From the sequence record PP355768.1: DNA of 64,000 bases; one strand, written 5' to 3'. The notes under the pieces were generated by a model. The model was not told the origin of the DNA. It ran no database searches and saw only the letters and a program-made list of their open reading frames with translations. Below are positions 5,120-39,080 of the stretch, piece by piece (within the stretch, counting starts at the first letter, position 1; each line of letters starts with the position of its first letter). Position numbers and translations under genes: made by a program.

Positions 5120-7308
5120 AGCGCGTCCCAGCCTGCGGGGGTCTGCCCAGTAGGGGTTGACGGCTTCTCCGCAGCTACACGGAAGCGCAGTCCTATGTAG
5201 TTCCCTTTTGAACCAGGGGTACCGTTTGTACCGTCCTCCCCAATTGCGCGGATCGCTGAACTCCAACCACCAGTACCTACACGCTGACGCATGAATATAT
5301 CACCAGCGGTAAAGGTCGAATGCCAGTTGGTGGTGCCATCTTTAGACCACTGAACTTCTACTGAGCCACCAGCAGGTCCTTGTGGGCCCTGCGGTCCAGT
5401 TGCACCAGTTGCACCAGTTGCACCTTTCTCACCATCCACTCGGATCGGGTCTGACCAACCCTCAACAGTTAGAGCGTTAGTATCGCCATTGAATCTACCA
5501 GAACACATCCAAAGAGGGGTTCCAGTCGGTGGGGTACGACTCCAACCACTAGGGTCATTGATATTGCCTGGTTTCGTGGGCTTACTAGCACTGATCTGGT
5601 AAATCTGAACGGTGTAATCACCGTTAGAACCATCAGTACCGCCAGTACCTGGGACACCAGACCACTGGGATGCAGCTGAGTAGTTGGTACCGTCTACTAG
5701 AGCAGGAGGACTCTTCTTAGGATCCAGAGTACCCTGCACAACGTACACGTTCTGATTCTGAGCAGTGCGGTTAGGCGGGAATGCGGACCATCCAGCTGGT
5801 GGATAAACTTGGTCAAGCGGGCGACTTGGCAGAGATGTACCAAGTTTATAAGCAAATACAGTCTGCTTACCCTGCATACCGGTTTCAAGGTCTACATCGC
5901 CTCCAGGAGTACCGATTACAACGTTACCAGAAATGCGAAGAGTATCACCGTCCCAGCGCACATACTGAGTGTTATTACCTAGGTCAAATTTGGCCTTACC
6001 GTCAACGTTGTCAACACCCATCCAGACACCACCTGCGTTATTACCGTACTTCTTACCCTGAGTGAAGATTGCCGGGTTATCTTTACCGGTCAGGTTAGTA
6101 AGAATTACGTTAGCAGCATTAATGTCTTTAGTGATAACTTTACCATCGACGTTTACAATCTTATTAACAGGGTCGAATGAAATCGGCGCTTTACCATTTT
6201 CATCGAGTGTACCAAGAACTACTGCACCTGTAGCAGCATCGACTAAGAAAGTCTGCTCCCACTGTTTGGTGTTAGAGTTCCAGAGTTTACCTTTGATACC
6301 TGCGTAGGTCATTTCTACACCGGTCTCGTTAATGAATGCATTGTCGAAAGTGGTGCTCTCGTCTATAATATAAGTAACCTCGTTAGAGTTAGTTATAGAC
6401 TGAGTATCTGGGCCCCAAGCAACCGATAGTACACGGAAGCGGTGGCGGATTTTGTAAGGGAAGCTAGTGATAGTACCAGCTTTAGCTGCACCCACGTTTA
6501 GCTTGTTGGCCTTAGTCCATCCAGTTTTTGCAAACTCATCGTTACTAATATACTGGATGATAAATTCACGAACGTTAGCACCCGTACCACGAGTCCAATC
6601 CCATTCCAGGCGAACGTCAAAACGCTCCATACCATCTTGGATGTGGGCAGTTTTGAAACGCAGGTTAGTTGGGGCAGACGGTGGAGTGAAGTTGTAGGTC
6701 AGGTTAAACAGTGATGGCCAGGTATCATACCCAGAAACGTCCACAGTAACACCGTCCGGCATAGTAACAACACCAGATACCCGAATATTGTATCTGCCAA
6801 CCGGAACACCACCAAAGATGATCTGCTCAGTGATTGGCCCACGGTAGTACTTAGTCCAGGTACTAGAACCTTCAGGTTTCATTTCGATGGTAACGTATTC
6901 GGCCTCACCAGAAAGCTCTACGACAACCATAGGAGCACCAACACCTACGTCAACAGATTCTGCAAAAGAAGACACCTTGGTGATCTTCGGAGCAGTTTTC
7001 ATCTTGAAGTTAACGGTGCTAGAGAGGTTCATGCCTACTTTAGCAGCCATCAGCTCCGCATCGACCATTGAGTCGTAGAAAGCACCCTGAGCAGAGTAGG
7101 TAGCGCCAGCGGTTAAATTGTTAATTGTAGCGATGAAGGTATCAACGCCGGTAAAGTCCCTACGGGTAGTTACTCCACCCGTAGTTAGCCAGAAAGTTCT
7201 ACCAATTACATCGTAATCGGAAAAGATTGAGTGCTGAATACTCGCAATCGTGTAACCGGTCACGATATTCTGCAGTACCATTTTAGCTGGTGCTATGTTT
7301 GAAATCAT
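5056..7308 (-). CDS. pb4: Central straight tail fibre pb4-like, N-terminal 727 aa, then an out-of-frame tail to a premature stop
   Basis: [33 protein letters not shown] matches the T5 pb4 N-terminus; lies directly after pb3. Confidence 0.9.
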
Positions 7309-10155
7309 TTAGATATATGCCCATGCAACCGACTTCTCGCCCTTTGGTCCCTCCGCCTGAATTCTTGGCTGAAGTGCTCTGTAAATCCCCAAAGTATTCG
7401 AGTTGTTGGCCTTGTAGTCGAGCTTATTGTAGCCCAACAGGTAGCTGTAGTTATATAAACTGGTGATCTTCGCGGATCTAAGCAGTTTATTAGTGTTGTC
7501 CCTTATTTCAAGCGTGTAGAAAATCCCTGAAATCAGCCCCTCTTCCTGCAGCTTATCCCATCCTAACTCTAAGTCAGGTCCTACCCATTCAGCAGGGTCA
7601 GGAGCAAGGTTAAGCACCCGGAAGTTTTCCACCATACTAAGGTTCTTAGCTGAGTTCAAATCTACAGAAATTGTTACTGGAGAGCTACGACGACCATTGA
7701 TATCAACAGCGCGGATCTCGAAAATAGTCAGTCCAGCAGGCTCACCCACGATATCTTGGAACATCCTAACGTTAGGTGTGAAAGCAGTCTGCTGCACAAT
7801 ATAAGGATCCACACGGTCCGATTTACGTATTGAGTAATAGACTACGTTAGGTGTCAAGCTAGGAAGCCATGAAAGCTCTCCGTTTTTGCCAACATCACCT
7901 ACCATTCCACCAGGTGTAGGGGTATACTTAAAGTCTCTTGGTGGCAGGACGTTATTGGATATTTCAGGAACGACCTCGCTACTGTTATCCACCTGCGTTG
8001 AGTTAATAAATACATCCTCACCATACTCCTGAAGAGTTACGTTTATCTTACCATCCCTTGTGTTCTCCACCTCATCTACTAGGAAGAACTTCTTATTCCA
8101 ACCATAACGATCGTAGGTGAATACTACAGGATCATTAGGTTCTATACCAAGGAATTTGTAAGGTAAAGAGAAACTCAGAGAGCGAGAGTAACGAGACTTC
8201 TTAAGCTCTCTATCTGCCAAGCTTCTAGCAGTGTAGTAGTTGGTTATGTTAGCAAAAGAAAGTTGAAGTTTCTTGTCAACTCCACGATCTTCATTCTTAA
8301 ACTTAGAATTATAGAACGTTATAGAGTTGGTTTTCCAGTTCAGGGTAGGATCAATCAGAGATGCCTGAACTGAGTTGTACTTATTACGGCCTGTAGTATC
8401 TGAGAGATCCAGGTCCCCGTAAGTATCTAGGAAATTAAGTTCTAGAGGAGTTTTTGAATCTTTCTCTACGGTGATGCGGAAGATACCTGATAGGTTATTC
8501 AACGCCCCCTGGAAGGATTCTAATAGCTCCTGCACGTTTTTGAACACAGAGTTGGAGTTATCCAGGATTGTGTTCATTTGCATTATTTGTCTGTTTTCGG
8601 CTGTCCAGCTCTCCCATCCAACGTATCTCCAGAAAGGTTGCCAACTAGTTTGATAAGAGGTGTCTATAATGTTTAATAGATCGGCCTCTTTTCTCCAGTC
8701 ACCAATCACCATTCTGTCTATCGGGATACTTGCACCAAAGGTAGTGGAGGTTAAGTAGTCAAATGTTTGCCATACACCATTTTGGCTGGTTTTATCTGTT
8801 CTAACAGAGCCATCTGCCTGGTATACTTTTACTTTACGTCCGCTTAATTCTGCTGATACTTCAGGAATATCAGTTCTGTTCTCCGTGATAGTGAAGCGTA
8901 TGACAGCGTATGCGGTGTCTAATAACTTGTACCTAGAATCCCAGTACTCCGGACCATTACCGTTCTCTCCTTGAAGGAAGAAATTGTTAGCAGCAGCAAT
9001 ATCTCTTAGTACCGTAGCTACCGTCTGGTCTGGCTTACCGTGGAATGTCCAGATTCGTATATCCCCGTTACCGTCATTGTACTTGTATTCTTGACCATGC
9101 TCTGAGAGAGATGTTGACGGAAGTCCTGTGGAAATTCTTGCCATAGTATCTCCCGACACCCTTTTTTGTCCAAAGCACGTACGAGAGGTACTGTCAGTTT
9201 GATCAGTACAGATCATAGGGGCATCCCCAAACTGGAAGTCGAGGAATCCTTCAATCTCACCCTCACAAAACGCGTAAACCACATACACAACGTTTGGATT
9301 GTTTCTTTCTGTATCCGCGAAAACCGGAATACCAGGAACTTTTTGAGTACCATATACTACAGGAATAAACTTGGCCGCAAGGTTGAAGTCCAGGTCTACT
9401 TCTTTAGTAACAGTCTCGTAATACTTTTTAAGGCTGTAGCTCTTGGAGAGACCGAATAATTTCTTCTTAGATTCTAGCTTGTATCGTTCTTCTTTTACTT
9501 GATATTTAGCTAGGAAGTTAACGCTCTTGTTGGCGTGGAAGAATCCGTAGTCCTCTTGGTATTCCGGTCGTTTGGCACCGTGAGAAGGTAGTAATTCTCC
9601 ATTTACAATCTCAAGTCCTCGGTGGGAGGCGTCGTCTGTGAAGCGTCCAGCAACTCGCTCAAAATCGTAGAATTCGTTAGAACAGTTCCAAGTTATAACA
9701 GAAGTACCAACTCCGGATACTGTATTGCTTTCCTTGATACCACCACCCACGATCTTACCCCTGAAGAAGAGTAATGGGCCATTAGTATCTGGGTCCACCG
9801 GAAGGATTTCCCCATTGTCGTCGATGATCGCCTGATATATAGAAATAGAACGATCTAAAAATGATACGCCACTTTGCACTAACTTAATGACTTCGTTGGC
9901 ATCCGTACCAGTAACACTGAAGTTCAAACTACCGACGGTTAACGTACGATTTTGTTTGTGACTGCTGATTGTTTTTATTTTCCCTGATTGGAAGAGTATA
10001 CCACCGTAGTTGATATCTCTCATATAGTCCGTCATATAAGCGTAAACAGCATTATTACCCGTGGACCCCGGGAGTTCGATAGAGACAAGATACGCTAATC
10101 GTATCTTGTCATTGTTGGCAAGGTAGGCTTTCGCAGAAGGAAGGATCTGTCTCAT
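7309..10155 (-). CDS. pb3: Baseplate hub / tail tip protein pb3
   Basis: 948 aa (T5 pb3 is ~949 aa); sequence recognisable; between pb9 and pb4. Confidence 0.92.
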   Translation of the reverse strand: MRQILPSAKAYLANNDKIRLAYLVSIELPGSTGNNAVYAYMTDYMRDINYGGILFQSGKIKTISSHKQNRTLTVGSLNFSVTGTDANEVIKLVQSGVSFLDRSISIYQAIIDDNGEILPVDPDTNGPLLFFRGKIVGGGIKESNTVSGVGTSVITWNCSNEFYDFERVAGRFTDDASHRGLEIVNGELLPSHGAKRPEYQEDYGFFHANKSVNFLAKYQVKEERYKLESKKKLFGLSKSYSLKKYYETVTKEVDLDFNLAAKFIPVVYGTQKVPGIPVFADTERNNPNVVYVVYAFCEGEIEGFLDFQFGDAPMICTDQTDSTSRTCFGQKRVSGDTMARISTGLPSTSLSEHGQEYKYNDGNGDIRIWTFHGKPDQTVATVLRDIAAANNFFLQGENGNGPEYWDSRYKLLDTAYAVIRFTITENRTDIPEVSAELSGRKVKVYQADGSVRTDKTSQNGVWQTFDYLTSTTFGASIPIDRMVIGDWRKEADLLNIIDTSYQTSWQPFWRYVGWESWTAENRQIMQMNTILDNSNSVFKNVQELLESFQGALNNLSGIFRITVEKDSKTPLELNFLDTYGDLDLSDTTGRNKYNSVQASLIDPTLNWKTNSITFYNSKFKNEDRGVDKKLQLSFANITNYYTARSLADRELKKSRYSRSLSFSLPYKFLGIEPNDPVVFTYDRYGWNKKFFLVDEVENTRDGKINVTLQEYGEDVFINSTQVDNSSEVVPEISNNVLPPRDFKYTPTPGGMVGDVGKNGELSWLPSLTPNVVYYSIRKSDRVDPYIVQQTAFTPNVRMFQDIVGEPAGLTIFEIRAVDINGRRSSPVTISVDLNSAKNLSMVENFRVLNLAPDPAEWVGPDLELGWDKLQEEGLISGIFYTLEIRDNTNKLLRSAKITSLYNYSYLLGYNKLDYKANNSNTLGIYRALQPRIQAEGPKGEKSVAWAYI

Positions 10156-32666: not shown

Positions 32667-33071
32667 TTATTCTGCCGACTCTTTTACTTCATCCTGAACG
32701 CCAACCATACGGGCGATAACGTCCAGTTGATCCAGCTTCATTTGTTCCAAACTTGCCAGGCCGTCGGCATCTTCGATCAGGCCGTCAGCAATGGCGTGCT
32801 GAGTGAGAACGCGCACATAGTGAGCCTTACGCAGGGAGGAACCGCCGCCGACTTTGCGCGGCTTATCGGACTTCTGATACACCTTTGCGCTAACCAGTTT
32901 AGAGCGCACTTTAACATGCGATTCAGCACCGACAGCCTTTGCAATATCGATAAGACCTTGCGAGTTAGCCACCTCCAGACCTTCGGCGGCAATAATGCCT
33001 TCATACATAGAAATCGCAGTTGCGGCGTTTGTTTCGTTCCATGCAAATTTTTCGGTTTTAGTAGCAGTCAT
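32667..33071 (-). CDS. A2: A2 protein (second-step DNA transfer, DNA-binding)
   Basis: 134 aa; VRSKLVSAKVYQKS..RKVGGGSS.RKAHYVR as in T5 A2. Confidence 0.92.
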   Translation of the reverse strand: MTATKTEKFAWNETNAATAISMYEGIIAAEGLEVANSQGLIDIAKAVGAESHVKVRSKLVSAKVYQKSDKPRKVGGGSSLRKAHYVRVLTQHAIADGLIEDADGLASLEQMKLDQLDVIARMVGVQDEVKESAE

Positions 33072-34394: not shown

Positions 34395-34590
34395 GCGGAG
34401 AATTGTAAAGAAGCGTAAAGAGAAAACAGGCCCACGATAGATAGGAAGCGCGCGCACGTGACACAATATTTAAAGAAAGTCAACGAATATTTTTACTATT
34501 TTTCTTCAAAAGGGGTTGACAAAAGCTATTTCACACGAGGTGAGGAGATCGCCTCATACCCGGTATGATTCATCGGCTTTTATCTAAAAC

Positions 34591-34911
34591 CGCTTAGAAT
34601 CGATTCTAGAGCGTTTTAGACCCTGTTAATAACTTATACAAAAAGCAAAAATGAAATTTAATTAGTTATCCACTAGACAAATGATTATTTTTATGAAAAC
34701 GCAAAATAATGCTTGCGTTTATTTTATGCTGTACTCCTGTTTTCCGGGCAAGTTATCCACAGCACAAAATAACTTGACAAGCTGAGAAGCGGTATAACGA
34801 GATATCCCCAGACTTATCCACAGGTTATCCTACTGTATATTTATACAGTATATTCCAGCAGCGGTAATACTCTAATATACCCCTAGAACGCTCTATAACG
34901 CATTCTGAGCG
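34591..34911. repeat. Non-coding block: inverted 29-bp motif pair flanking DnaA-box-like sites and a LexA box
   Basis: CGCTTAGAATCGATTCTAGAGCGTTTTAG (34591-34619) and an inverted copy (34883-34911); TTATCCACA at 34753-34761 and 34814-34822. Confidence 0.75.
34831..34850. promoter_or_regulatory. LexA (SOS) box
   Basis: TACTGTATATTTATACAGTA, 1 mismatch to the consensus TACTGTATATATATACAGTA. Confidence 0.75.
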
Positions 34912-34959
34912 CTTTAAATTTAGAAGCCATATTAAAGGCCATTGCTAGAGGGGCGCAGA

Positions 34960-34995
34960 AAAACAAAAAGCCCGCTCATTATAAGCAGGCTTATT
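34960..34995 (-). terminator. Terminator after the leftward pre-early operon
   Basis: Minus strand AAGCCTGCT..AGCGGGCTT followed by TTTGTTTTT. Confidence 0.65.
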
Positions 34996-35011
34996 ATTAG
35001 TTAGCTAACTA

Positions 35012-35359
35012 TTAGCGGAATACCGTTTCAATTGTTTCGCCGCTAGAGCATACCGACCCGCCGCGATAAAACAGGCGTTCGGTTTTATATTTGGTTAGCA
35101 GATCATAGAGATCCAGATCATCGGAAAGCGGGTAAGATTCCCCCAGCGCGGAAACGGAAACAGGTTTACCCGCCACCAGATCACGGCAAATCAGAATCAG
35201 CAAAGGCCAACTAATATTGATAGCATCGCCCCGCAATCCAATTTTGAGGGTAGCCACTTCGTCAATATGACGCGCATTCTGGCGGCTAACGTATTGAATC
35301 ACAGATTCCATCGTTTTATAGTGAGCCAGAAAATATTTGTTGACATAGATATAAATCAT
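35012..35359 (-). CDS. Pre-early hypothetical protein
   Basis: 115 aa; ATGA coupling. Confidence 0.72.
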   Translation of the reverse strand: MIYIYVNKYFLAHYKTMESVIQYVSRQNARHIDEVATLKIGLRGDAINISWPLLILICRDLVAGKPVSVSALGESYPLSDDLDLYDLLTKYKTERLFYRGGSVCSSGETIETVFR

Positions 35360-35880
35360 AGGTATACGACCCCGCTAACCTTCCAACCGGATTTTAAACC
35401 TTCCTCAATATGAAGAATAGTTTCAGCATCCGGGATATAGATAAACGTTTTCAATTCGCGCAGATTAATGACCGCCTTTCCGTCAACTATCTGGATATAG
35501 CCCAAATAGATTGCCCGCTCTAGAACGGAATGAAGGGGCGAACCACCATTAACGAGGTTGCAGGAATGACCGGGCCAGTACATATAAAACGACCCTTCTA
35601 CCCCAGCATTACAGTATTTTTCGTCGTCGTCTTCTTCCCAATCATCCTCGCCTAACATACTTTCAGCATGTTCGCAAGCCTTTTCCCAGGAAAGGGAATC
35701 GACGTCAATTCCACGACCTAAAAAATGAAGGTCAGTCCAGCCAGTACCGCAAAGGTTAGTATCACATTTGAGGACAGCGGCGACTTCCTGAGACTCAATT
35801 CGCCCGCCCTCTAAATATAAACCTTCTTCCGCTTCTACCGTACAATTAATGCCCGGTACGCAAGATTTCATATGAAACAT
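35356..35880 (-). CDS. Pre-early hypothetical protein, acidic
   Basis: ATG 35880 after GGAG; GEDDWEEDDDE patch. Confidence 0.72.
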   Translation of the reverse strand: MFHMKSCVPGINCTVEAEEGLYLEGGRIESQEVAAVLKCDTNLCGTGWTDLHFLGRGIDVDSLSWEKACEHAESMLGEDDWEEDDDEKYCNAGVEGSFYMYWPGHSCNLVNGGSPLHSVLERAIYLGYIQIVDGKAVINLRELKTFIYIPDAETILHIEEGLKSGWKVSGVVYL

Positions 35881-35933
35881 GGTTTTCTCCAATAATGGGG
35901 GCGGCTAGAGATTCAGCCGCCGGGAAGGGGATT

Positions 35934-36431
35934 TTACAGCTTATCGCGGAAAGTATCAAGCCGGTTGTTTAGCTCTTTAATCGCGTCGGCATGGATTTCG
36001 TCATACGTTGACACGATATCCGCCAGCTCATCCATAGTTAGCGCGCTAACATTAATATCAGTTTTCACGGTTAGCTTTTCCGGTTCCGGGGCGGCTGGTG
36101 GTTCCGTGGAGAAGCTGAGAGATTCCGGGCGAACTAGGAAAATCTCTAGTTCGGTTGCACCGTTTTCACAGTCAACCTCATACGTATTTTCCCCAATGTA
36201 AACATCAAAACCGTAACCGTAAACTCCACCAACACGCAACGCCATTCCGGTGATTTCGTCGTGATCGGGGTAACAATCGCGGCGGTCAATTTGTTGCGCC
36301 AAAGCCTTAACGTTATCTTTTGCAACAATAATTGCAAAGCGTTCGCACCGCTCGTCTGCGTTGCGCAAATAGCGGAAAGCCTCGGCAAGCGTCATCTTTT
36401 TACCTTCAAAAGTAGCGGTTAACCGTTCCAT
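35934..36431 (-). CDS. Pre-early hypothetical protein
   Basis: 165 aa; GGAG RBS. Confidence 0.72.
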   Translation of the reverse strand: MERLTATFEGKKMTLAEAFRYLRNADERCERFAIIVAKDNVKALAQQIDRRDCYPDHDEITGMALRVGGVYGYGFDVYIGENTYEVDCENGATELEIFLVRPESLSFSTEPPAAPEPEKLTVKTDINVSALTMDELADIVSTYDEIHADAIKELNNRLDTFRDKL

Positions 36432-36496
36432 TTTTGTCTCCAGTTAGTTAGCAGGGTAATTATTATAGCGCCCCATTATAGAGGCGCTGGATATAA

Positions 36497-37459
36497 TTAC
36501 TCTGATTCGTTTTCAATCAGGCTAGAAAGATTGACGCCTTTCAATACTTCGTCAATCATTTCGCCTACATTGAAACTTTGTACCAGTTCCAACATGGCGG
36601 CTTGCATTGCAGCGTCAGCCGCAATCACCGCTTTGCGGTTGTTCGGCGCATACTGGCTAACCGCAAAATTCAGCAGGTTAGCAATTACCACACGACCTAC
36701 CGCCGTGTCAACATAACCGCGAACCATAAACGGCGCTTTGCTGGCGGCGATGCCGGAAACTTTTTTCAGGACGATGGAACCAGCTTCCAGTTTGGCAGCG
36801 TTTACGGCAGCGTTTTTGTTAGCGGCAACGATAGCGGTAGCGGTAGATTTGATAGTATTCATTTGTAATGCTCCAGTCTCAAAATTATTAGGGTTAACTA
36901 CATTTTCAGTAACAGCCGGGGCGACTTCTTCTAGCTCGCCATCATAACGATAATTTCCAGTCCTTGCCCCTTCTTCGATTTCGATATCGTAGAAGTTACA
37001 TGGTAACAGGATACTACCGTCCTTGTCAAGCACAAAAATCATCATTTCGCTAGAGATTCGTGCTGGTGGTAGTTCCAGATGATCACAAAGATTTTTAATC
37101 CATGCGCGGGCATCGGTGAAAGCAAGCAGTTCGCTTTCATGGTAGCAAAAACGTCTCGACGCTTGCTTACCCTCGGACGCCTTATACAAATAAGCGTCCG
37201 TAGTAGTAGACACTATCAGATCAATAGGCTGGCTGTCAACCAAATATTGATCATCGTGATAAATAACAATCGCCGCGCCGGGGTTGGCTAGAGCGTAGTC
37301 ACGGCAATGCTCAAAGGCATAGCCGGATCTACTTTCCATATTTGCGCGATAAACGGCCAAAATATGACCAATAGAGGCGCACTTACTGCCGTCTAACAGG
37401 TTGCGAGCGCCACCGCGAACCATAGGCAAATTAGCAACGGGGGTAAACTTCTGTAACAT
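36497..37459 (-). CDS. Pre-early hypothetical protein with an Ala-rich amphipathic C-terminal half
   Basis: 320 aa; first gene after a promoter; AAAGGAG RBS. Confidence 0.78.
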   Translation of the reverse strand: MLQKFTPVANLPMVRGGARNLLDGSKCASIGHILAVYRANMESRSGYAFEHCRDYALANPGAAIVIYHDDQYLVDSQPIDLIVSTTTDAYLYKASEGKQASRRFCYHESELLAFTDARAWIKNLCDHLELPPARISSEMMIFVLDKDGSILLPCNFYDIEIEEGARTGNYRYDGELEEVAPAVTENVVNPNNFETGALQMNTIKSTATAIVAANKNAAVNAAKLEAGSIVLKKVSGIAASKAPFMVRGYVDTAVGRVVIANLLNFAVSQYAPNNRKAVIAADAAMQAAMLELVQSFNVGEMIDEVLKGVNLSSLIENESE

Positions 37460-37491
37460 TTTCTGTTACTCCTTTGTTTGGCTGAGAATCT

Positions 37492-37634
37492 ATTATAGCA
37501 AGATTCCCAGCTTTTTAGCAAGCACTATTTTCTCTAGGCTTGTTCCCGTTCAGGAGATCGCATTATGGCGGAATCGGATTTGATTGTCTACTACTAAAAA
37601 TAGTAGTTGCTTCCCGCTAGAGTTATGTTATTAT
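37492..37634. promoter_or_regulatory. Divergent pre-early promoters
   Basis: Minus: TTGCTA-18-TATAAT (37521-37492). Plus: TTGCTT-16-TG.TATTAT (37607-37634). Confidence 0.65.
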
Positions 37635-37662
37635 TATGACTCCAAACAAAGGAGATCGAAAA

Positions 37663-37776
37663 ATGGCTTTTTCAATGTTGGCGCTCGGTTTAGTCGGTTC
37701 TATGATGGTTTTGGGCTTTATCGCTTTTTGCGGCTATGCCCTCTATGATACCTTGTTTAATAAGGAGGCTTTTTAA
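37663..37776 (+). CDS. 37-aa single-pass membrane peptide
   Basis: AAAGGAG RBS; MAFSMLALGLVGSMMVLGFIAFCGYALYDTLFNKEAF. Confidence 0.6.
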   Translation: MAFSMLALGLVGSMMVLGFIAFCGYALYDTLFNKEAF

Positions 37777-37876
37777 TGAGAACTTTACGCGGTGGTAGTT
37801 CCTAGAGACTAAATGGATTGCTATTTCTGCAATTATTAGCTTGCTAATCTTATGGGTAGCGGAGGTATTTTTATGA
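37776..37876 (+). pseudogene. Broken paralogue of the next gene
   Basis: MRTLRGGSS resembles MSRSLRGGSP; the hydrophobic tail KWIAISAIISLLILWVAEVFL is in another frame. Confidence 0.45.
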
Positions 37877-38052
37877 GTAGATCATTACGGGGCGGTAGCC
37901 CAAAAAGCCGGGGACACGGGATTTACCACGTCCGGCAGTCTAACGATCGTTTTCGCCAGGAAATACGCTCCAGCGAAAAAGTTAAGGGCGTGCAATGGCC
38001 TTGGGTTGTTATCCTGATAATCGTTCTCATTATCATTGGGTCGGCTTTATGA
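37873..38052 (+). CDS. Small basic protein with a C-terminal TM anchor
   Basis: GGAGG RBS before ATG 37873; WPWVVILIIVLIIIGSAL tail. Confidence 0.65.
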   Translation: MSRSLRGGSPKSRGHGIYHVRQSNDRFRQEIRSSEKVKGVQWPWVVILIIVLIIIGSAL

Positions 38053-38192
38053 TGCTTACAATCCTATTTATTAGCCTGCTATGTATTCTGCCCGGCCTGG
38101 TGGCGCTAGAGGTCTGGTCACGATCACCGGTTGACGCGGAGCGCGAATTAGAGCGCGAAAAAGCAAAGCGTGACGGCTGCCCGTTGCTATAG
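38049..38192 (+). CDS. 47-aa membrane protein
   Basis: ATGA-coupled; MMLTILFISLLCILPGLVALEVW then a charged tail. Confidence 0.6.
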   Translation: MMLTILFISLLCILPGLVALEVWSRSPVDAERELEREKAKRDGCPLL

Positions 38193-38200
38193 GTCGGCTT

Positions 38201-38299
38201 TATGATACTTTTGATAATAGTTAGCATAGTAATTATTACACTGGCAATAGTTTCGGTCGTAAACTATTTTTGGCCTGAATGTTTTCACGGCGATATGTA
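38201..38299 (+). CDS. 32-aa membrane peptide
   Basis: MILLIIVSIVIITLAIVSVVNYFWPECFHGDM; shares the GGTCGGCTTTATGAT start context with the previous ORF. Confidence 0.55.
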
Positions 38300-38362
38300 A
38301 GAGTGTCGCCGCCCTCCTCCACCGCGTGACCCCTTACTAAAATACCCCCACGAAAATTAAAT

Positions 38363-38470
38363 CGCTTAGAACGCTTCCTAGAGCGCTTAAAATCGATATC
38401 AGCAGAAAGTGTTGCTGGGAAATACTGTATAAATATACAGTAGGATAACCTGTTGATAAGTCTGTTGATA
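38363..38470. repeat. Inverted copy of the 34803-34911 module (29-bp motif, LexA box, DnaA-like boxes)
   Basis: Reverse complement of 38413-38470 aligns to 34803-34860 with an identical ~30-bp core. Confidence 0.8.
38423..38442. promoter_or_regulatory. LexA (SOS) box
   Basis: TACTGTATAAATATACAGTA, exact reverse complement of the box at 34831. Confidence 0.75.
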
Positions 38471-38565
38471 ACTCGCTACCGATCGATTGAGGCGTCAAGC
38501 TAATTTACAATTTTGTATAACTCTGGGGATAACTTAAATGATAGTGTTTCTCACTTCCTTTTTGA

Positions 38566-38660
38566 AATGCGAATCATTCTCATTCGCATTCAGCTCGGTA
38601 AACGCAAATCATTCTCATTCGCATTCAACTTCTCAAATGCGAATCGTTCTCATTCGTATT
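38566..38660. repeat. Three 25-bp palindromic repeats at 35-bp period, Fur-box-like
   Basis: AATGCGAATCATTCTCATTCGCATT and variants at 38566, 38601, 38636. Confidence 0.85.
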
Positions 38661-38692
38661 TGCATTTCCGACCCCCCGGCCCTTCCTGCGCT

Positions 38693-38904
38693 TATGTGCG
38701 AATCCGACAATTTGTCAAGCAAAATATTACGTGAGGCTGCTAGGGTATGTGCAAATCCGATGAAAATTTATTTTTACCGCCCTGGGGGTTGGCGTGAGTT
38801 GGTGGAAGTATGTGCAAATCCGACACAGCTAGTAAATATAGCAGCGCGCAGTTTGCTGCGGCGCAGCGGTGGGCGCGAGTTTGGGGAAGTATGTGCAAAT
38901 CCGA
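38693..38904 (+). repeat. Four direct 15-bp repeats in the putative injection-stop region
   Basis: TATGTGC(A/G)AATCCGA at 38693, 38746, 38809, 38890. Confidence 0.9.
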
Positions 38905-39080
38905 CGGGTATTTTTTAGGGGAGGGATAAACGGGGTTAATTGGGGCAATTCGGGGATGATGGGGGCAGGGGGCAGATAAGGGAAAATATTATGAGTTAAA
39001 TGAGGGTAAAGGGGTTGACACAGAAAAAATTCCTGTGGCTCATCTATCTATTTAATCTAACTTTTTTATCTTATAGAGTT

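Follow-up and report, generated by a model that had tools for sequence, protein, structure and literature searches.

Our analysis of a 64-kb stretch of DNA from Klebsiella phage vB_Kpn_AM_K6 (referred to as a whole as the window; 100% identity to PP355768.1), which represents the Sugarlandvirus-like (T5-like) part of this phage, revealed that two inverted repeat modules each carry a 20-bp palindrome that is a first-rate predicted LexA operator and into which an array of phased DnaA-type boxes runs. The modules and their DnaA boxes are already known from T5-like phages, of which the window phage is one more member. Apparently unreported so far is the LexA-operator identity of the 20 most conserved bases of these modules. 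Comparison among relatives shows that this composite of a phased DnaA array and a near-consensus LexA-type operator sequence is under strong purifying selection across the Demerecviridae, and the view that selection maintains the box as a LexA site joined to a DnaA array appears well supported.

Two inverted modules with predicted LexA operators and DnaA arrays

A first-pass annotation made from the letters of the window had pointed to two LexA-like palindromes, and both its coordinates and its letters proved correct. The palindrome TACTGTATATTTATACAGTA occupies 34831-34850, and the exact reverse complement, TACTGTATAAATATACAGTA, occupies 38423-38442; each is one mismatch away from the LexA consensus TACTGTATATATATACAGTA (19/20). 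The two boxes are part of a 66-nt inverted repeat (arms 34795-34860 and 38413-38478, 89% complementary, with 3552 nt between them) and form the inner ends of the modules, which comprise the following parts.

34753-34761, plus strand: outer ('IRC') DnaA box TTATCCACA of the left module, aligning with T5 IRC
34762-34803: left-module spacer with TTGACA at 34775-34780, poorly conserved except for a GTCAAG core
34804-34833, plus strand: left DnaA array ATATCCCCA, TTATCCACA (at 34814) and TTATCCTAC with 11-12 bp phasing, an architecture kept in all lineages
34831-34850: left LexA-operator-like palindrome TACTGTATATTTATACAGTA, 25.6 bits, the equivalent of the T5 IRD box
34883-34915, minus strand: left inner-flank motif of three phased YTAGRA units (T5 'IRB'-type), found by repeat search
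about 38359-38393, plus strand: inner-flank YTAGRA motif of the right module, found by repeat search and alignment
38423-38442: right LexA-operator-like palindrome TACTGTATAAATATACAGTA, identical to T5 'palindrome D' (AY587007.1 9330-9349)
38440-38472, minus strand: right DnaA array (T5 IRD') TTATCCTAC, TTATCAACA and TTATCAACA (the latter two at 38451 and 38463) with 11-12 bp phasing, 28/30 versus T5
38473-38511: right-module spacer with a GTCAAG core at 38494-38499, of T5 length and 12/40 identity
38512-38552, minus strand: outer ('IRC'') end of the right module with the DnaA-type box TTATCCCCA at 38524-38532, 34/41 versus T5 IRC'

Both boxes show the CTGT-N8-ACAG palindrome, the A/T-rich centre and the TA flanks of an SOS box. 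On a symmetrised LexA matrix, which we derived from the 18 E. coli SOS boxes tabulated in PMC3009722, each of them scores 25.6 bits (consensus, 26.9 bits) and thereby outscores all 18 E. coli boxes, which range from 8.8 to 23.8 bits in a leave-one-out comparison. The next-best 20-mer of the window reaches 13.2 bits. Two 20-mers with at most three mismatches to the LexA consensus are present in the window versus 0.01 expected, a number reached by none of 100 shuffles; the bare CTGT-N8-ACAG pattern alone is not significant there (2 versus 0.86 expected).

The DnaA-like boxes proposed in the first-pass annotation are present as well, on the plus strand in the left module and on the minus strand in the right one. 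Behind a consensus DnaA box, each module has further DnaA-type 9-mers of the same orientation at distances of 2-3 bp, which results in a cluster of three helically phased, co-oriented 9-mers plus an outer box. The last 9-mer of each array overlaps the first 3 nt of the LexA box, so that DnaA spreading along the array and operator-bound LexA would be expected to touch or to compete. Across the window the strict DnaA consensus is not enriched (7 versus 6.4 expected); 9-mers with at most one mismatch are (27 versus 16.9 expected, with 0/100 shuffles reaching 27), and six of these 27 are packed into two short strand-inverted patches, which are the modules.

On the inner side of the boxes, a motif that had been described as 29 bp long and as spaced 32 and 31 bp from them is real and occurs in three copies, the third one at 34587-34619. 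The motif lies, however, 32 nt away from the box on the left and about 34 nt away on the right, a distance that is thus constant within 1-2 nt. The YTAGRA units of this motif include CTTAGAA, CCTAGAG and TTAAAA, and the motif also lies inner to the LexA-like boxes in T5 (the 'IRB' type) and in Pectobacterium, Proteus and Vibrio phages.

Correspondence with the inverted repeats of T5

Klebsiella Sugarlandvirus genomes share 88-95% identity with this region of the window. In phage IME260, the homologous stretch is found at 5.6-10.1 kb, within the annotated 10,277-bp terminal repeat and downstream of dmp, A1 and A2. Homologues of these three genes occupy about 28.7-33.1 kb of the window, and its A2 is 66% identical to that of T5. 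The position in IME260 together with the A2 homology indicates that the region makes up the right-hand half of a T5-like phage's first-step-transfer (pre-early) DNA. The modules are located to the right of dmp-A1-A2 and left of where the terminal repeat ends, as T5-type repeats require, and judged by their sequence they are the Sugarlandvirus-type copies of the T5 inverted repeats IRC-spacer-IRD and IRD'-spacer-IRC'. The right module is situated just inside the point of the DNA-entry pause and is the published candidate for the injection stop signal (iss).

In the T5 record AY587007.1 (Wang 2005 annotation), inverted repeats C and D are placed at 6022-6152, D' and C' at 9332-9462, and 'palindrome D' (PalD) at 9330-9349. 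PalD agrees with the right box of the window in 20/20 letters; the box of the left T5 module reads CACTGTATAAATATACAGGG. A preprint (Davison 2020) reported the IRC-spacer-IRD and IRD'-spacer-IRC' arrangement in 25 T5-like phages including IME260 and Sugarland, with eight DnaA boxes, a constant spacer and a location of the repeats just left of the shear point. According to the model put forward there, membrane DnaA retains the DNA at the iss, and PalD is listed among several possible cleavage palindromes.

An alignment of both window modules and both T5 modules with modules of Proteus and Vibrio phages revealed a common order of parts and zero net change in spacer length. Identity to T5 is highest in the box (20/20) and the DnaA array (28/30), followed by IRC' (34/41), the inner flank (14/29) and the spacer (12/40). 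The window thus agrees with the T5 IRC/IRD repeats in where they lie, namely between A2 and the terminal repeat's end, and in the order of parts, which comprises the YTAGRA motif, the palindrome, three DnaA-type boxes in phase, an equally long spacer, the outer DnaA pair and the DRC and DRD repeats. It differs from T5 in its left module, which lacks part of IRC as published for the Sugarland/IME260 group, and in the enclosed cassette, which is inverted in the window.

From the interpretation given in the first-pass annotation, the LexA operator (as predicted from sequence), the DnaA boxes and the lack of a strong promoter over the boxes stand, but the published repeats and palindrome D had been missed. 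LexA and SOS are mentioned neither in the Davison 2020 preprint nor in two recent T5 papers, and the published accounts either leave the palindrome unexplained or regard it as a possible cleavage site. A full-text search retrieved no literature linking LexA or SOS boxes to T5-like phages, a result which is provisional as individual papers of 1987, 2005 and 2015 lay outside its coverage.

Conservation of the composite among T5-like phages

Alignment of A2 identified 40 loci in IMG/VR, of which 39 extend over enough upstream DNA. All 39 of these T5-like loci carry two boxes, which score 22.2-25.6 bits at the distal (iss-side) and 16.7-25.6 bits at the proximal position and are 1.6-3.9 kb apart among relatives. 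Divergent phages whose A2 is 36-61% identical to that of the window carry boxes as well: boxes of 17.7-24.9 bits fused to DnaA boxes were found in the Pectobacterium phages DU_PP_V and My1-type, in Proteus RP7-type phages and in three Vibrio lineages. Overall, the T5-like DNA surveyed, from phages of Klebsiella, Escherichia/Salmonella, Pectobacterium, Proteus and Vibrio, amounts to 859 kb and contains 94 boxes of at least 17 bits (shuffles, 1.6). A DnaA-like box adjoins 88 of these boxes.

When 66 distinct modules were compared in an anchored manner, the box emerged as the part with the highest conservation. Its variation is located in the central N8 and the outermost bases, and CTGT and ACAG are almost never altered. 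The centres observed include ATATCCAT, ATAAATAA, AAAGGTTT, ATATAATT and ACAAATAT, the first two of which resemble genuine E. coli operators, namely those of sulA (ACATCCAT) and istR2 (ATAAATAA). Loss of the CTGT-N8-ACAG spacing in relatives, which the first-pass annotation had named as evidence that would speak against LexA, was not observed; distant relatives keep the spacing while the centre varies. The two central bases of the box (34840-34841 and 38432-38433 in the window) are always AA or TT and never the AT or TA of a perfect palindrome, and which of the two orientations this AA/TT centre takes varies, irrespective of the arms, from phage to phage and from one copy to the other.

In two Vibrio lineages, the DRC-type repeats have been swapped for unrelated repeats, while the LexA and DnaA boxes are retained. 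Such a pattern is expected if the DRC repeats are read by co-evolving phage proteins and the boxes by host proteins of fixed specificity. The DRD-type repeats past the right module are kept family-wide with small changes.

The Proteus and Vibrio lineages carry an additional LexA-like box of 21-24 bits, which is not accompanied by DnaA boxes and is located 0.5-1.3 kb upstream of A2 (locus L056, position 8702; L057, 8689; L062, 9550; L047, 10971; L045, 11502). This box is preceded by YTAGRA units. In the Proteus loci and in L062 it abuts TTGACA or TTGACT, with a shared TACGCA/TACACG motif 17 nt further on, and no canonical -10 element was found at the additional box in the Proteus and Vibrio lineages.

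A host origin of the composite was also considered and rejected. A scan of 596 Gb of bacterial genomes for the composite DnaA-LexA pattern returned three matches, all on short contigs of metagenome-assembled genomes (L049, L050 and L051), which are binned as uncultured bacterium, Eubacteriales and Clostridia. On contig L051 the composite occurs twice, in inverted copies separated by 2.3 kb, and a homologue of the 320-aa product of the first cassette gene (see below) is encoded on L049, so that at least two of the three look like T5-like phage DNA. The contigs with the composite look like T5-like phage DNA mis-binned into bacterial genomes.

The enclosed cassette and neighbouring features

Between and beside the modules, the window contains the following features.

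34851-38422, minus strand: variable pre-early cassette between the modules, with four minus-strand genes and small plus-strand open reading frames
35012-35359, 35356-35892, 35934-36431 and 36497-37459, minus strand: the four cassette genes
37521-37492, minus strand: promoter-like TTGCTA-18-TATAAT ahead of the first cassette gene
34992-34968: terminator-like hairpin in the cassette
34587-34619: extra copy of the YTAGRA motif
34666-34674, plus strand: further DnaA-like box TTATCCACT
38566-38661, plus strand: three palindromic repeats of ~25 nt with a 35-nt period (T5 'DRC/palE-J' type), directly past the right module
38693-38906, plus strand: four TATGTGCRAATCCGA repeats (T5 'DRD' type), preceded by a CTGCGCTT stretch matching the T5 7.9% nick site

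The first cassette gene (36497-37459, minus strand) encodes a protein of 320 aa, which belongs to PHROG 4263 (function unassigned) and is a 35-38% homologue of T5 gene 011. The cassette is inverted as a block between lineages, with no change in the place or polarity of the modules. In the window, IME260 and DU_PP_V, the 320-aa gene is co-oriented with A2 and adjoins the distal module; in Tequintavirus, in Epseptimavirus-type loci and in Proteus RP7, it is anti-oriented and adjoins the proximal module, and the 178-aa gene is then found in reversed order. Modules that remain fixed while the enclosed genes flip fit the behaviour of cis-acting border elements. Recombination across the inverted modules would fit the inversion of the cassette. 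A search of PHROGs gave no match to a recombinase family for the cassette proteins, all of which are function-unassigned, and by this measure the cassette does not class as a Hin/Gin-type inversion switch.

As for the sequence record itself, PP355768.1 comprises 261 kb and is classified as Straboviridae, though the window stretch is Sugarlandvirus-like. Positions 200-204 kb of the record are 99% identical to T4-like Klebsiella phages, and the record has the appearance of two phages joined in a chimeric assembly. It contains the T5-like terminal repeat collapsed into a single copy.

A possible role in two-step DNA transfer

The stop of T5 after injection of 8% of its DNA, and the subsequent restart, have been an open question since the 1960s. 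DnaA is the only host factor that has been proposed so far for this stop, based on the boxes in the same repeats. A LexA site in these repeats would add a second and easily manipulated host protein to the model, which could be tested in standard E. coli K-12 strains. The most likely reading, for which we judge the chances to be evenly balanced, is that LexA and DnaA of the host come together at either border of the variable pre-early cassette as cis-acting transfer elements, a role which builds on Davison's DnaA model. Once the first 8% of the genome has entered, LexA dimers and DnaA would occupy both modules, and LexA/DnaA nucleoprotein complexes would form at both borders of the cassette. 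These complexes would act as architectural elements of the two-step transfer, by pausing, anchoring or insulation, and not as operators of strong pre-early promoters. Looping or bridging between the two arms, which had been suggested in the first-pass annotation, is possible. Moreover, as LexA is destroyed on RecA activation, its occupancy could, speculatively, report the DNA-damage state of the host.

Several observations weigh against such a role. How a protein on the cytoplasmic side would halt DNA entry is unexplained, and T5-type phages commonly grow on and lyse recA cloning strains. The hosts of all relatives found are Gammaproteobacteria that share one LexA motif, which leaves no host switch against which covariation of the box could be gauged. 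The conserved A2 protein is a DNA-binding dimer whose SVRSKL helix is likewise conserved, so that a phage protein with frozen specificity is conceivable, and sequence cannot separate LexA from a phage protein that reads the same palindrome. Furthermore, weak inward-facing promoter-like matches (9/12) overlap the boxes, either with the -35 in a DnaA box and the -10 in the box centre or with a -35 TATACA inside the box.

The LexA reading offers a cheap and direct experimental handle on an old question. Should LexA prove not to bind, what is left is palindrome D as already known, and an ordinary finding.

Alternative explanations

The main rival explanation, which we consider unlikely, is that the palindrome is bound or cut by A2 or by an A1/A2 complex rather than by LexA. 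Second-step transfer needs only A1 and A2 as proteins, and A2 binds DNA. As A2 is kept family-wide with an invariant S..VR.KL helix, a site for this protein could be equally conserved. Davison (2020 preprint) suggested the palindromes of the region, PalD included, as restriction-like cleavage sites which release the paused DNA, and PalD is listed among the candidates. However, the cleavage model needs a site on the right of the DnaA boxes, and PalD is found on their left, the inner side. A match to the LexA consensus in 19/20 positions, with a score above every tested E. coli box, would be a remarkable coincidence for an unrelated protein, and the box stays within the LexA range in phages of hosts from Klebsiella to Vibrio, while the DRC repeats, which resemble sites of phage proteins, vary between lineages. 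A2 itself (32667-33071, minus strand, in the window) was modelled with AlphaFold as an all-helical protein of seven helices (pLDDT, the predicted local distance difference test score, 78.6), in which the S..VRSKL helix is invariant from Klebsiella to Vibrio phages. The model has no significant structural relative, LexA included: a Foldseek search against PDB gave nothing below E = 2.9, with a LexA-DNA complex at rank 42 (E = 9), which is uninformative. A profile search against PDB sequences for A2 as a LexA mimic gave no match.

It is distinctly unlikely, in our view, that LexA acts here as an ordinary repressor, with each module holding a weak inward sigma-70 promoter silenced by DnaA and LexA, such that the copy upstream of the first cassette gene would confer SOS-responsive expression on the variable pre-early genes. 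The E. coli uvrB control region does combine LexA and DnaA sites. In the window, TTATCA-16-TATATT at 38459-38432 (minus strand) overlaps the right box and points into the minus-strand cassette, and T5 has inward-facing TATACA-16-TATTAT in the left and TATACA-16-AATAAT in the right module. As the modules are inverted, one inward promoter would face the first cassette gene, the homologue of T5 gene 011, in either orientation, and the idea therefore survives the flipping of the cassette. On the other hand, the match over the right box is the only one that overlaps a box in the window and reaches just 9/12, in agreement with the first-pass annotation, which had seen no clear promoter over either box, and no strong promoter was found over the boxes in the window, in T5, in one Proteus-type or in one Vibrio-type locus. 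Matches of 9/12 are common by chance here (17 versus 11 expected), and the -10-like hexamer depends on which way round the box centre lies, and this differs from phage to phage. The second copy would yield antisense RNA only. Finally, better promoter-like sites precede the cassette genes, at 37521-37492 in the window and in T5 upstream of gene 011, where a promoter has been characterised experimentally (recent T5 paper).

A more far-reaching version of the transfer role, in which LexA and DnaA together make up the host component still missing from the T5 injection stop signal and two-step entry is an SOS-gated checkpoint, strikes us as quite improbable. As long as no more than the first 8% of the genome has entered the cell, both modules would be clamped by LexA and DnaA; host DNA breakdown triggered by A1 would then activate RecA, and the loss of LexA would help A1 and A2 to release the pause. 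Under this scheme, prior SOS induction in a damaged host would alter the entry programme. Growth on recA strains implies that LexA cleavage cannot be essential, which limits this version.

We consider it very improbable that the boxes serve as DNA structures (hairpin or cruciform) or as recombination substrates for inversion or exchange of the cassette instead of as protein sites. The 20-mer does fold into an 8-bp hairpin (z = -5 to -6 versus shuffles), and the first-pass annotation had proposed a hairpin formed during entry, which is poorly supported: the eight pairs are A+T-rich (80% for the hairpin) and contribute only -4.6 to -4.9 kcal/mol, the DNA enters the cell double-stranded, and the arms are conserved as sequence, with nearly invariant CTGT and ACAG and no compensatory pairs. 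Recombination would explain the inversion of the cassette between lineages, where gene content and length (1.6-3.9 kb) also vary, but not the 20 fixed bases amid drifting neighbours, and no recombinase was recognised among the cassette genes.

Titration of LexA by the boxes, with induction of the SOS response or of sulA in the infected cell as the first-pass annotation had envisaged, is scarcely credible despite the very high affinity predicted for the sites and the four boxes per virion genome that follow from a terminal and duplicated repeat, because two boxes per injected end, or 2-4 sites per infecting genome, cannot deplete a pool of roughly a thousand LexA molecules per cell, because T5-type phages degrade the host DNA within minutes and thereby remove the genes that derepression would turn on, and because the fixed juxtaposition with DnaA boxes would be left unaccounted for.

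Comparison with known systems

The modules share with DnaA arrays of the oriC type a consensus 9-mer and, behind it at spacings of 2-3 bp, weaker 9-mers, all co-oriented and running towards an A+T-rich segment. The A+T-rich box is thus found where the unwinding element of such an origin would be; unlike in oriC, this segment is a predicted LexA operator and does not consist of 13-mer repeats. Furthermore, no sign of origin activity was seen for the modules, and the T5 origins map near mid-genome (Davison 2020 preprint).

With the chromosomal SOS boxes of E. coli, such as those of umuDC, sulA, recA and istR/tisB, the phage boxes have in common the 20-bp TACTGTAT-N4-ATACAGTA palindrome, and their scores equal or exceed those of the best chromosomal boxes. 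Chromosomal boxes overlap the promoter of the repressed gene, whereas the phage boxes are hundreds of bases away from strong promoters. The phage boxes also differ in that they are paired in opposite orientation, fused to DnaA-box arrays and carried by a virulent phage. The only host example known to us with LexA and DnaA sites in one regulatory region is the control region of E. coli uvrB, in which a LexA site and a DnaA box act on defined promoters of one gene.

The use of a host SOS repressor by a phage is known from GIL01, which employs it together with gp7 via conserved SOS boxes (PMC4551915). Boxes of the GIL01 type control a lysogenic/lytic promoter in temperate elements, whereas T5-like phages are strictly virulent and their boxes are not located at a recognisable switch promoter. 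If LexA indeed binds to the modules, the T5-like phages would represent a rare strictly virulent phage family that retains SOS boxes outside any lysogeny switch.

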